Sequence record: KU521356.1
Strand: one strand, 5' to 3'
Length of the DNA stretch: 64,000 nucleotides
Of this stretch, positions 24,603-28,979 are shown piece after piece. Made by a program: the position numbers and the translations under genes. The notes under the pieces are model-generated. The model was given only the letters and a program-made list of their open reading frames with translations, was not told the origin of the DNA and did not search any database. Each line of letters begins with the position of its first letter. The stretch's first letter is position 1.

Positions 24603-26714
24603 TTAAAACCGCATATATGCGGGCTGATATGGTTTATACATACGTGTATCAAAGTCATTAAAATCAATTGCGATATCATACTTCTCAAATGATTCTTTTA
24701 GCATCTGATAAATGATTTTATTTTCATCAAAATTATTATTTTTATCAACATAACTTTCTAATGACTCTGTGATCTCAAATGGAGATTTAATACCCATAAT
24801 AGCTTCAACCATTGCCTGACTCCATTTTAGAATGTCATCTGACCTTGTTGAGATATTCGGTTCATCTTCTGTATCGAGAGTACATTGATATACGACTGTT
24901 TGTGAATCCTGACCTTTACGGTAAATTCGAGCAATAGCTTGTTCTAGAATGTAATGCCTAAACGGTGAATTAATTGTCACCATAGTATCAGCCATCGTCA
25001 TACGGACCGCTGTTGAAAGGGAAGCATATGTAGCTACCAATGGATTTAATTTAGGGTCTTTCTCAAATCTACTGATTATTTGAGGTAAATTGTCATTGGT
25101 TTTACCATACACCACCGCCGGATGCATACCTAATTTATTGGTGTACTTATCAACAGTATCAACAACCTCAACAAACGATGTAAATGCAATCGTTTTCTTC
25201 ATAGTTGATTCAGTGATACCAACCCAGTCAATATACGGTACCATGTCCACATGGCACTGAATGCGTTTAGCACCTAAAACCCTTCCCAAACATTCACCTT
25301 GTATCTTTAGCATAACGTATTTTATAACTGATTTAATATCTCTAAAAGCAGCTATTTCATTACGAGGTAAAGTTGGCTCTATAAACATTTTTTCATATTG
25401 GTTAGATTCTTTAATTTCTTCACCAATGTATCGCGGGTCTTGATTCTTCTGAATTATTTTAATCAAATTCTTATAGCGAGCGAAACCATCTTTCTGCGCC
25501 TGGGTCTTAAGAGAGTTCTCGTGTATCGCCATTAGTTTAGCCCAATACTTCTCATCTTCTGGTCGGCGCGCAGCATAGAACTTTACACGTTCTCTAATAA
25601 AAGCTTCACAATCACGTTTAATGGCATTAAGAGTATACTGTGATCCATTTGGTATCTTGATACGATACGCTTTTATCCTCGGTGGTAAAACCTCAGTATC
25701 TTTCTTTTCAATGACGTACGCAATTAACCCAAAGCGATGTTGGACAATATCTAATCCTTTCTGTGTCTCTTTTCCAAATGCTTTCTTAAAACGTTCTTCA
25801 ACCTCATTGGTGAAGAGATCGTCTAATACTCTTAATGCACTTACTAATTCAGAACCAAGTGCTTTAACAGGGGTACCTGACGCTAATAATCTGTTATTAG
25901 AGTTAGACATAAAACATATTTGCTGGAACTTAAGAGATTGTGCAGAATTAGGATCGTTCATATTGTGTGATTCATCCAGAATCACCGTAATGTTCTTACC
26001 TTTGAATATACCGCTTCTTAATAGATCAATTATTTTATCTTGCGCCTGGTAATGGGATATAAGTATTCTTTGACCGTTGTAGGCTTTATCATCAATGGTC
26101 GACCATACTTTTTGTCTTTCCTTATACATCTCAATAATAGATGGCTTCCATATTAGATCAATAGACTTCTTTTCACAAACAACTATAATGATATCCGACT
26201 CAACCATTTCAGCAATAGCCATCGTCATGAATGTCTTACCAGTACCAGGTTTACCTGCAACAATATCACCACGTAAACCATACTGGTCAATTCGATAATT
26301 ATAATTTTCAAAATAAGCTTTTTGAGACTCATCTGGTGTAAATGTCAATTTGTCTAACATCTTGAAATTGAGTCTACCTGGTACAGAGTTGGTATCTACA
26401 GGACGAGTATTTTTTAACCAGGTATATTGAAGCATTGCTTCACGGATGGCATTAACAGTTTTAATAGAGATGTATCTACTTCTATAATTCTTTACTGCTT
26501 CTAGCATGTAATATATTTCAGGAGCAAAGAATTTATAAAATGAAATACTACGACGACTAACCGTGTTAAATAACTGCGTAGCTAATTTAGTGGTTCGCCA
26601 ATACTTGTTAATATCTCTAATGAATGCAGCACCATCAAAACCACTGATGATAATTTCTTGATCAGTTTCAGTAATTGATAGCGAGCCCATTAGCTTCCTA
26701 AATGAGTCTATCAT
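24603..26714 (-). CDS. Superfamily 2 helicase (phiKZ gp203-like)
   Basis: Motif I GKPGTGKT, motif II DESH, motif III SGTP, motif VI QAIARIYRKGQ. Confidence 0.9.
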   Translation of the reverse strand: MIDSFRKLMGSLSITETDQEIIISGFDGAAFIRDINKYWRTTKLATQLFNTVSRRSISFYKFFAPEIYYMLEAVKNYRSRYISIKTVNAIREAMLQYTWLKNTRPVDTNSVPGRLNFKMLDKLTFTPDESQKAYFENYNYRIDQYGLRGDIVAGKPGTGKTFMTMAIAEMVESDIIIVVCEKKSIDLIWKPSIIEMYKERQKVWSTIDDKAYNGQRILISHYQAQDKIIDLLRSGIFKGKNITVILDESHNMNDPNSAQSLKFQQICFMSNSNNRLLASGTPVKALGSELVSALRVLDDLFTNEVEERFKKAFGKETQKGLDIVQHRFGLIAYVIEKKDTEVLPPRIKAYRIKIPNGSQYTLNAIKRDCEAFIRERVKFYAARRPEDEKYWAKLMAIHENSLKTQAQKDGFARYKNLIKIIQKNQDPRYIGEEIKESNQYEKMFIEPTLPRNEIAAFRDIKSVIKYVMLKIQGECLGRVLGAKRIQCHVDMVPYIDWVGITESTMKKTIAFTSFVEVVDTVDKYTNKLGMHPAVVYGKTNDNLPQIISRFEKDPKLNPLVATYASLSTAVRMTMADTMVTINSPFRHYILEQAIARIYRKGQDSQTVVYQCTLDTEDEPNISTRSDDILKWSQAMVEAIMGIKSPFEITESLESYVDKNNNFDENKIIYQMLKESFEKYDIAIDFNDFDTRMYKPYQPAYMRF

Positions 26715-26784
26715 TGCATTTTTCCTTAAGGGGTATGTAAATATAACTCTAAGTCATAAGATTAGCTAACGAATAAAAATACGC

Positions 26785-26982
26785 ACAGTGCAATGATATA
26801 GAGCAAGGCAGTTTGCGTAAAACGCACTGCACTTTAAGGGGGTGATCCAGTCGTAAATAAACCGGGGTACTAAAGTATCGTCAGGAACGACACGAACCCC
26901 AACTACGGTGCCTTGCTACTCACCGACCTCTAGATAGGGGTCGGACCTATTACATTAAAGGAGCCCACCAGGGGCTCCTTTA
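26785..26982 (+). ncRNA. Candidate structured non-coding RNA, family unknown
   Basis: ORF-free, GC-rich island with several helices (see findings), ending in a hairpin terminator at 26958-26982. Confidence 0.45.
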
Positions 26983-27010
26983 TGCCATTCATTATAAATT
27001 AATTTAAATC

Positions 27011-27018
27011 TATATTAC
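27011..27018 (+). promoter_or_regulatory. Early promoter core TATATTAC
   Basis: aatttaaatcTATATTAC upstream of the 27065 gene. Confidence 0.7.
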
Positions 27019-27064
27019 AGGATTACCATAAAGATATTTATCCTTTTATAATGAGGAAAAGATT

Positions 27065-28979
27065 ATGTCCGATATTAATAGCACCAATGTAACAGATGAA
27101 TTAGTACCTTATTTTCCATCGGCGGATGCCATTACTAGTTCTACTATTAGGGATGAAGTAATTCCTAATATTTTGTTATTCTACAAGAATGCTTTTAGTG
27201 ACTTCCAACACGTTAGTAATATCACAGGTACTAACCAGATTGCATCAGGTTATTTACCAGGTGTAGGTTATTATTTCGAGTATAGTGTTACCGGTAATGC
27301 TAATCTTATTCCACCTGAAGCAATTAAAGTATTACGTAATGTAATCACTAAAAATGGATATAAAGATGACATTACCATCACACCAAAAGGTTTTGGCCTA
27401 ATCAATTGGTTCATTGTAAGAGTATACGTAGATGAGCAAATTAAGAAGACTACTCAATAAAGAATTAGAAAAAGAGTTAGTTAAAAAACTAGATTTTCTA
27501 GAACGTGATTTTAGAGCTATAAAAGAAGTTATCAAAACTGGAAAATATCCTGATCCTGTTAATCCGAATCGCAGACAAAGTGATTATGATTTATCTTTTA
27601 ATAATTAACCTATAAGAGGATGCTATGGAAATCACATTTCCATCTGTAAAAGAAGTAATGACAACTGATCCAGCATTTATTGATTTGGTTCTGAAAAGTA
27701 AATTACTTACTATCCGTAAAGCAATGATTGATGTTATTCGAAACATTGAGAATACATCACTAGCATCTAGTAGGCTTGTTAAACAGAAAAGCTATCCATA
27801 TCAAACTACTTTCGAACTTGTATTTAACCCAAAGGTTTTTAAATGGTTTGATAAAACAGATGCTATCAATATTAAAAATATTCTTCATGCTGAAGTAGTT
27901 AACCAGGATTGGGAGAGTATTGATATTTCTTATAATGGTAGGGATATACATGGTTTTGAAAAAGTGACTATTGTATTAACTCCTATGAAAGATGAAGCTA
28001 TTAAATATGATCTTTCAAAAGCATGAATTAAGATAACATATACCCTCCCCTTTATTGGGGAGGGATTATTTACTTATATGTTTAATAGAATAAGGACTCT
28101 ACCTTGGAATAATGCTAATGCTCTTCACCAGAGAAAAGAGATATATAGATAGACGTATTACACATTATCAGGTTGAGTAGTAAATTAAAACAACCAATAA
28201 TACGTTATTCAATATTGAAATAGTTGTTATAAAACATTTATATTAATCTAATACAGGAAATAAAGAAAATGGGTGATTATGTATATTTAGAAACTCAAGC
28301 TAAAGTAAATAATGAATGGATTGGTATCGAAGATATTGAACTAACACAGAATTATGATCTTTATGCATATCTACTTGATATTCGCAATTATTGGGATGTA
28401 AAACCATTTGCTTACCATAATGGTGTTCCTGATGATCTGAAAAAGAAACCAGAATGGTGGAGTAGTTATGATGATGATCCACGCTGTGATGCATGGATTA
28501 GTGGTGAAGCTATTCTAAAAGGTATGAGTGAGCTTAAACCAGTTACTAAAACAGTATATATGAGTCTATATACTTATATGTCCTGGGATCGTATGTCAGA
28601 ACCAGATTGCTATTCACGGTATAGCCCACGTCTTGTAACAGATGAACCAAAAATTAATAAAATCTCTCAAAAACAATTACAGTATTATAAGAATTTAACT
28701 GAAAGTTTTTATTCTCTAAACCTTAAAGCTAATTATGATTGGAAGGTTATCGACGGCCGGTTACAACGAGTCGGGCCTAAATGTGGTAAGAATCACCTAC
28801 GTAATCTACGTCGAGTATCGCGTTATCTATCTTTCTGCAATGTTCCTAATGAACCTATCAAAGTAACTTATACACTCACGGCTGATCAACAGCGAAAAGA
28901 ATTTAAACCTTTTATTTATCAAGTCCGAAATGCCGTTCTTAAGTACGGTGATATCCGTCTTCTAATGAGGGTTAGATAA
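27065..28979 (+). other. Hypothetical CDSs: 27065-27460, 27432-27608 (58 aa, not in track), 27625-28026, 28269-28979
   Basis: ORFs with RBS; 27432-27608 translated manually (MSKLRRLLNKELEKEL...). Confidence 0.6.

Follow-up and report, generated by a model that had tools for sequence, protein, structure and literature searches.

The intergenic stretch between PHIKZ203 and PHIKZ204 carries no annotated feature at the locus studied here in any of the phiKZ-like records listed, and it raises the question of whether a discrete structured RNA is made from it and, if so, what such an RNA would do. We analysed it within a window of 64,000 nucleotides from sequence record KU521356.1, and positions below refer to this window unless a phage coordinate is named. 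The 350-bp stretch is 100% identical to positions 212768-213117 of Pseudomonas phage phiKZ (NC_004629), and window coordinates are converted to phiKZ coordinates by adding 186053. On one side lies PHIKZ203, a DEAD/SNF2 helicase gene on the - strand (start 26714), and on the other PHIKZ204 on the + strand (start 27065). An earlier note on this DNA had described a GC-rich core without open reading frames, and both properties hold: the GC content of the RNA region is 0.52 vs 0.355 for the 64-kb window, and no open reading frame of >=30 aa was found in 26715-27064.

The same note had inferred a discrete + strand RNA of ~200 nt. Public RNA data contain such a separate transcript, with a different 5' boundary: given the 5' end mapped at 26800, the RNA covers 26800-26948 or 26800-26985, not 26785-26982. 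The stretch is present in 14 public RNA runs, with holders from 12 studies. Four RNA runs were examined over 26500-27300, all of them as Logan contigs rather than raw reads, so abundance and exact ends rest on few junctions plus a published site. In a nanopore cDNA run (X13), 5' adapter letters stand directly before 26800 in three records, and a fourth record shows them joined to the RNA's first bases. These letters, which we take to be the ONT strand-switching primer, would mark the 5' end of a + strand RNA. The X13 contigs span 26797-26958, and an added poly(A) run behind 26949 gives a 3' end. Summed word depth in this run was in the thousands at the RNA vs tens to hundreds in the flanks; this is a poor expression measure, and contig depth was not taken as one. 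An Illumina RNA run (X9) holds a separate 210-nt contig covering 26777-26986, with gaps to the gp203 and gp204 contigs on either side.

Published data supply a second view of the ends. In their ONT-cappable-seq preprint, Putzeys et al. list in the supplement a + strand termination site, T095, at phiKZ 213001; this converts to window position 26948 and hence is the 3' end of the short form of the RNA. A + strand start site at the RNA locus is absent from that supplement, and because ONT-cappable-seq called the termination site but no start, the 5' end may be processed and not primary. With its own 5' end and its own 3' end on a single strand, the locus is an independent small-RNA gene. On the opposite strand, the same supplement lists a late promoter, P107, with its start at phiKZ 212808 (-), or window 26755; a minus-strand adapter junction in the public RNA data falls at 26755, in agreement with P107 as the promoter of the gp203-gp202 unit.

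The 5' end at 26800 is also the last A of a promoter-like block (Table 1). Across 10 aligned phages its TAC and TATAG are invariant and their spacing is fixed, and the layout resembles that of phiKZ middle/late promoters in the Putzeys et al. supplement, for example P116. The RNA is probably transcribed by the phage's own non-virion RNA polymerase from a middle/late-type promoter at this position. We read it as a primary transcript; a processed 5' end is not excluded, and the 5' triphosphate status is not established. At the other end, the terminator that had been placed at 26958-26982 is there as a hairpin, its stem covaries in relatives, and the element fits the phiKZ terminator motif described in PMC10914365. 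Further downstream, an early-type promoter (27010-27018, +; TATATTAC at 27011-27018) lies ahead of gp204, and contigs start at ~27025.

Table 1. Window coordinates of the features of the RNA locus
Feature	Position	Strand	Remarks
Promoter-like block	26774-26800	+	A-rich, with TAC, 14 nt, TATA
Short RNA form, ~149 nt	26800-26948	+	P1, P2, anti-tail segment, P3, P4; from run X13 and T095
Long RNA form, ~186 nt	26800-26985	+	Ends at the canonical terminator; from the X9 contig
P1, 5' strand	26802-26810	+	Pairs with 26909-26917
P2 hairpin	26811-26827	+	Stem 26814-26818 with 26822-26826
Anti-tail segment	26835-26854	+	Between P2 and P3; complementary to the last 20 nt of Pseudomonas 16S rRNA
P3 domain	26864-26900	+	Basal GGGG 26864-26867 with CCCC 26897-26900
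P3, small hairpin	26868-26877	+	Inner part of P3
P3, apical hairpin	26878-26890	+	Inner part of P3
J3/1 joining strand	26901-26908	+	AACUACGG; nearly invariant, unpaired in the consensus structure
P1, 3' strand	26909-26917	+	Pairs with 26802-26810
P4 hairpin	26923-26944	+	Short form ends 4 nt beyond
Terminator hairpin, then UUUAUG	26958-26985	+	phiKZ-type terminator

The predicted fold of this RNA is both stable and shared. On the + strand, 26780-26985 folds at -75.3 kcal/mol (z = -4.4; all of 200 dinucleotide shuffles were worse), and the - strand fold has z = -3.6 by dinucleotide shuffles. All of the helices proposed in the earlier note are present where it had placed them. Single-sequence folds give the same architecture in all homologues: in 5' to 3' order, a long closing helix P1 with P2 immediately after, an unpaired strand of ~25 nt, a branched P3, a conserved joining strand, the 3' strand of P1, a variable P4 and a phiKZ-type terminator. 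The inner pairs of P1 (AAGGC/GCCUU) are nearly invariant, and its outer pairs covary, with G-C, C-G, U-A and A-U at one position (checked by eye). P2 occurs in all homologues with differing stems and loops, such as the GUAA loop of PhiPA3. In P3, changes on both sides were seen in all five modelled basal pairs and in all six pairs of the inner and apical stems, and most relatives close the apical hairpin with a GNRA tetraloop. The P4 position is taken by a hairpin of unrelated sequence in most relatives, as judged by eye from single-sequence folds and outside the covariation model.

Covariation was assessed for P1, P2 and P3 in 12 phages on an alignment (A6) that had been fitted to the structure model, which is a caveat to all of these figures. 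Standard pairs fill 83% of the cells, vs 34-43% in controls with partners slid by 1-3 columns. Changes on both sides were found in 15 of the 24 modelled pairs across the 12 sequences, none of 500 shuffles reached any observed covariation measure, and the covariation score was 0.378 vs 0.06-0.13 in the slid controls. The alignment contains 16 G-U cells that pair only on the + strand, which bears out the earlier remark that the U-G wobble works on that strand alone. A conservation and covariation check in related phages had been proposed for the locus; the comparison made here shows compensatory changes across Pseudomonas jumbo phages of several genera. A structured RNA family is defined by helices that such changes maintain, and by comparison of the aligned sequences this RNA is one, with the reservation that the alignment was fitted to the model.

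Some pairings did not survive comparison. A pseudoknot between 26787-26792 and 26828-26833 had been proposed; its 5' arm exists in the DNA but lies upstream of the RNA 5' end at 26800, and the stretch is also not conserved in relatives. In the minimum free energy fold of phiKZ, the G-run of the anti-tail segment can pair with CCCC 26897-26900 of P3. We rejected this pairing as a conserved state, as the P3 stems of relatives, of the GAUAC/GUAUC type, cannot pair with the motif. Run on the raw alignment from MAFFT, RNAalifold gave a pairing of UAAGG with CCUUG, which was set aside because the outer pairs of P1 covary with the P1 5' strand.

The fold belongs to no family that we could name, as had been suspected. 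Rfam 15 gave no match anywhere in the window at gathering thresholds, and within 26600-27150 at E values up to 10 it gave only chance-level matches of 16-20 bits vs cut-offs of 50-75; ARAGORN found 0 tRNA or tmRNA genes in the window. The locus is also absent from the 17 phiKZ ncRNA candidates in Table S7 of the Putzeys et al. preprint supplement. Small RNA candidates published for phiKZ and 201phi2-1 (PMC10914365, PMC11512511, PMC8545117) come from the same phages and the same type of data, with similar sizes and phiKZ-type terminators; they differ in that, of the present locus, only the 3' end is listed, as T095. The two phiKZ RNAs named in the Grad-seq study (PMC8545117) are both other RNAs, and the conserved sRNA of 201phi2-1 sits upstream of the gp182 homologue, a different locus. 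Neither Rfam nor the published annotation of phiKZ includes this RNA family.

To define the breadth of the family, homologues were searched by blastn, by motif scan and with a covariance model (R1, built on alignment A4). One copy per genome was found in phiKZ, SL2, PhiPA3, PS119XW, HPP-Temi, 201phi2-1, Viktualia, Phabio, D6, Psa21, Noxifer and one IMG/VR metagenomic contig. D6 and Psa21 are P. syringae phages, HPP-Temi falls in the PS119XW group and SL2 in the phiKZ group. The Noxifer homologue was detected only via the motif, and not by R1 under strict filters. R1 gave no match under strict filters on representatives of other chimallivirus genera, and no convincing homologue was seen in EL, in OBP or in the Erwinia, Vibrio, Ralstonia, Xanthomonas, Klebsiella, Serratia and Aeromonas relatives examined. 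A 23-bit R1 match in OBP lies inside coding sequence and was rejected as spurious. Scanning viral contigs for P2 plus the motif returned one new homologue, 24 chance matches and records of PhiPA3 and 201phi2-1. A scan of 11 genomes outside the family for the short motif returned terminators, coding sequence and real ribosome-binding sites, plus one site in phage Goslar that is taken up below. As modelled, and as far as these searches reach, the family is confined to chimalliviruses that infect Pseudomonas.

The genomic setting of the RNA gene is only partly stable. It adjoins the helicase gene in most genomes and is displaced from it by 0.7-1.6 kb in 201phi2-1 and Phabio. In PhiPA3 (locus L002 1501-1687, matching window 26800-26985) its orientation relative to the helicase gene is inverted, so that it lies on the same strand and directly upstream. 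The downstream gene varies: it is gp204 in phiKZ, the helicase gene in PhiPA3 and a gene on the opposite strand in PS119XW, and in 201phi2-1 and Phabio unrelated small genes follow. Two records hold small genes at the locus itself, namely a 29-aa 'hypothetical protein' gene over the RNA and on its strand in Viktualia (L036:617-706), and three short ORFs across the RNA on the opposite strand in HPP-Temi (L038:514-932). These are probably mis-annotations of the RNA locus. Regarding the neighbouring helicase, some records label the gp203 type 'DarB-like antirestriction'. The match span of gp203 is 2.1 kb in phiKZ vs ~2.9-3.2 kb in SL2 (74235-77165), PhiPA3 (216447-219608), PS119XW and PA1C. In these four the homologue matches in two spread pieces, so the gene appears to carry an insertion there, which could be an extra domain, an intein or an intron.

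What the RNA might do is suggested by a feature that the earlier note did not mention: the invariant, unpaired segment between P2 and P3 that is complementary to 16S rRNA. Its core, AGGRGGUGAUCCA (26837-26849), is 13 nt long, unchanged in 12 of 12 phages, and the sole long invariant block of the RNA. The 3' ends of 16S rRNA were read from genome contigs, and the Pseudomonas type, taken from 38 loci of several Pseudomonas species, ends in GGCUGGAUCACCUCCUUA. The phiKZ segment forms 20 contiguous pairs with this tail (17 Watson-Crick and 3 G-U), and the next best contiguous complementarity in the window, counting both strands (128 kb), is 11. All 12 homologues reach 14-20 contiguous pairs, with duplex energies of -30 to -38 kcal/mol vs -9 to -13 kcal/mol for ordinary Shine-Dalgarno cores. 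For the phiKZ duplex with the last 15 nt of 16S rRNA, z is -6.2 (1000 shuffles). Binding of the free 13-nt tail by the phiKZ RNA has a computed net gain of -10.4 kcal/mol after the RNA's own fold is opened; the predicted unpaired probability of the motif is only moderate (0.39-0.59 vs 0.36-0.43 for the whole RNA), which weighs against such binding.

In the central 16 positions of the segment there are ~21 departures from the perfect complement; ~18 of them keep the pairing, by A to G opposite U or C to U opposite G, and 3 break it. The invariant core corresponds to 16S positions 1528-1540 (E. coli numbering), made up of the unpaired tail and the terminal two base pairs of helix 45. The less conserved extension of the segment would invade this helix, reaching 5-7 nt into its 3' strand in most homologues; Phabio is without the extension. 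No second copy of the motif, and no copy of its complement, was found in these phage genomes, which rules out a phage-encoded target with >=11 complementary bases. Two-sided covariation between the RNA and its target cannot be seen, because all hosts have the same 16S tail. On this comparative evidence, the complement to the 16S tail is exceptional and is selectively maintained.

Resemblances to 16S rRNA were also noted outside the anti-tail segment, without an assessment of their significance. J3/1 and the 3' strand of P1 (26901-26917) resemble the complement of 16S 1501-1515, in phiKZ with 12 Watson-Crick pairs, 1 wobble and 1 bulge, and the 5' strand of P1 resembles 16S 1501-1507. The RNA looks, by these resemblances, like an antisense version of the 16S 3' end in which P3 replaces the top of helix 45.

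We consider it somewhat more probable than its opposite that this is a stand-alone RNA which attaches to the 30S subunit through base pairs with the 16S tail; both the binding and its effect are inferred. The transcript, its fold, its conservation and its complementarity have been demonstrated in the data above, and ribosome association exists so far only as a binding potential. The proposed course is as follows. Transcription would begin at 26800 and end either after P4 or at the terminator. P1 would close the molecule and hold P2 and the branched P3 domain together, leaving the strand between them, which has no conserved internal partner, as an over-long Shine-Dalgarno mimic. The 13 invariant bases would pair with the free 3' tail of 16S rRNA, and the pairing could extend to the 14-20 contiguous pairs counted above. 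Through this duplex the RNA may dock on 30S or 70S particles, so that the anti-Shine-Dalgarno site is occupied with no start codon behind it, and it would act as a ribosome-bound decoy, cap or tether, not as a messenger. Possible consequences are a block of initiation led by Shine-Dalgarno sequences, a shielding or protection of the 16S tail, or a tethering of ribosomes to whatever binds the P1-P4 body, such as phage factors. A plain global block of initiation has no obvious benefit, because phage messages also use Shine-Dalgarno sequences. More tentatively, and with more doubt than belief, the RNA could be an anti-Shine-Dalgarno 'cap' whose very stable duplex of 13-20 bp leaves a large share of host ribosomes unable to use ordinary sites, or a tether through P1-P4 to phage factors at the phage nucleus, by which middle and late translation is reprogrammed. 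Among the roles listed in the earlier note (regulatory RNA, decoy, ribozyme or RNP scaffold), a decoy or RNP scaffold fits best, and nothing points to a ribozyme.

Other explanations of the segment were weighed against docking on the ribosome. Purine-rich motifs of the GGA type are bound by Rsm/Csr proteins, and the apical loop of P3 in phiKZ reads CAGGA. Host sRNAs, moreover, shift in gradients during phiKZ infection (PMC8545117). The RNA might, on these grounds, be a trans-acting regulator or a protein sponge whose segment binds an mRNA or a protein, for instance an RNA-binding protein of phage or host, with the 16S match as a by-product. We regard this as unlikely, if the most serious of the rivals. 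The CAGGA loop is not conserved and reads GGGA, GAGA or GUGA in relatives, the match to 16S rRNA runs over 14-20 contiguous positions, and the variable positions change almost only in ways that preserve pairing with rRNA, which a protein site does not predict; a complementary site is also absent elsewhere in the phage genomes. An RNA that titrates Rsm/Csr proteins would be expected to hold several conserved GGA loops, and here there is one CAGGA loop, in phiKZ and SL2 only. An antisense clamp on immature 16S rRNA seems to us still less probable. It would pair with both flanks of helix 45 (the tail plus 1525-1529, and 1501-1514) while the 16S rRNA is nascent or unfolded, and disturb late maturation of the 30S subunit instead of binding finished ribosomes. 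In its favour are the reach of the complementarity, in most homologues, into the helix 45 3' strand and the likeness of J3/1 and the P1 3' strand to the complement of 16S 1501-1515, ordered as in an antisense copy. That second match, however, rests on no statistical test and its segment is already paired in the covarying P1, the invariant core ends at the edge of the free tail, and Phabio does without the extension.

The remaining candidates place the function in cis, in a peptide or in the DNA. Many small RNAs of phiKZ come from premature termination in 5' UTRs (PMC10914365), and in PhiPA3 the element stands immediately upstream of the helicase gene on the same strand, as would suit a leader that serves the downstream gene as an attenuator, riboswitch or ribosome standby site. 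Membership in such a class would call for a constant downstream gene, and neither gene nor orientation is constant among phiKZ, PhiPA3, PS119XW, 201phi2-1 and Phabio; in addition, the RNA has two 3' ends and gp204 has a separate early-type promoter, and a leader is accordingly a poor candidate in our judgement. A very strong ribosome-binding site of a tiny unannotated ORF is poorer still, and we find it hard to defend: the Shine-Dalgarno core is perfect and Viktualia has its annotated 29-aa ORF over the element, but the sole start-like codon is a GUG that overlaps the core without a spacer, the frames behind the core run from 4 to ~45 codons without conservation, and the phiKZ RNA is without an AUG. 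The site of a coding gene would show a start ~4-12 nt downstream together with a conserved ORF, and it shows neither. Least credible of all is an element that acts as DNA, for example a replication origin, a packaging signal or a set of protein-binding repeats, which the earlier note had itself named as an outcome that would refute its RNA. The inverted repeats do lie between divergent genes, and the - strand does fold well too; against this, the transcript ends are strand-specific, the 16 G-U cells would be A-C mismatches on the other strand, and the element is intact in PhiPA3 although its orientation relative to the helicase gene is flipped.

Among known systems, the nearest kind to a docking RNA is, by analogy, the ribosome-associated non-coding RNA, although no binding data exist for the phiKZ RNA. 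SprF1 of Staphylococcus aureus is a small RNA that acts on the ribosome itself and binds via a purine-rich stretch, and in Haloferax volcanii a fragment of tRNA-Val attaches to 16S rRNA close to the mRNA channel and competes with mRNA during initiation (PMC8938821). Both are cellular, and neither has a long exact complement to the 16S tail or a dedicated conserved fold, whereas the phiKZ RNA is phage-encoded, 150-190 nt long and complementary over 14-20 contiguous nt, with ribosome binding not shown. In its logic of imitating a ligand, the phiKZ RNA may also be compared with 6S RNA, an abundant structured RNA that imitates an open promoter and occupies the binding site of RNA polymerase; the phiKZ RNA would do so with the 30S subunit, by posing as a Shine-Dalgarno site. 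The two differ in target machine, fold and family, and no Rfam 6S match was obtained for the phiKZ RNA. Cap-independent translation elements of the barley yellow dwarf virus type contain a short complement to 18S rRNA near its 3' end and are proposed to recruit ribosomes. They too are conserved viral stretches complementary to the small-subunit rRNA near its 3' end, but they act in cis on the viral message with ~6 nt of complementarity, whereas the phiKZ RNA is a separate non-coding transcript with at least 13 invariant nucleotides.

Similar cores were observed in unrelated phages. An 80-nt RNA candidate of PAK_P3 (85937-86017; locus L279:2560-2690), upstream of tRNA01, has the core GGAGGUGAUCCAG (Table S7, preprint 10.1101/2023.10.13.562163). 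It shares the 14-nt core of the phiKZ RNA, with ~16 contiguous pairs to the 16S tail. It is not homologous (no R1 match) and is shorter, with tRNA genes beside it; an AUCUCC downstream of its core allows the two to fold into a hairpin. A 47-nt stretch around this core is ~89% conserved between two genera of Pseudomonas phages (PAK_P3/PaP1-like; 164 records). In Escherichia phage Goslar, AGGAGGUGAUCC, which covers 12 nt of the core, occurs at a non-coding site at ~87361-87371 (L067:1290-1560, - strand), with a strong hairpin before it and a chimallivirus-type terminator after it; it folds as GGAGGU, loop, AUCUCC, as the PAK_P3 element does. Its likeness to the phiKZ RNA may reflect analogy, not homology. 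For the 14-mer AGGAGGTGATCCAG in IMG/VR, 32 of 115 sites, among the matches listed, are non-coding without an ORF behind, which exceeds the non-coding share expected for phage genomes, with no proper control. Several of these non-coding sites fall in recurring families (L285, L264 and L281; L217/L218/L249/L225; L224/L296; L270/L275), and in one metagenomic family the uninterrupted complementarity to the 16S tail reaches 18 bases. The theme of an over-long Shine-Dalgarno mimic may be wider than the phiKZ-type family.

No description of a phage RNA complementary to the anti-Shine-Dalgarno tail was found in the literature, with subscription journals outside the search. Non-coding RNAs receive at most a passing mention in recent reviews of jumbo phages, and published work on ribosome targeting deals with proteins.

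What was found is a stand-alone structured small-RNA gene of phiKZ-like Pseudomonas jumbo phages, which adds a well-supported, unannotated RNA family at a locus where present annotation shows either nothing or erroneous small ORFs. It is not yet settled how nucleus-forming jumbo phages seize control of translation, and the factors linked to the ribosome so far, for example phiKZ gp014, are all proteins. Without binding data, the phiKZ-type RNA suggests a so far undescribed viral way of occupying host ribosomes. Were an RNA shown to target the most conserved point at which mRNA docks on the bacterial ribosome, viruses would have a new effector class, and synthetic anti-16S oligonucleotides a natural counterpart. 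If the cap or tether reading is true, the phage redirects the choice of messages for translation during its middle and late phases; and if the mimics in the PAK_P3/PaP1 group, in Goslar and in several metagenomic families are what they appear to be, this would be a general and unrecognised viral strategy. A well-developed model system is available in which the idea can be put to a direct test.
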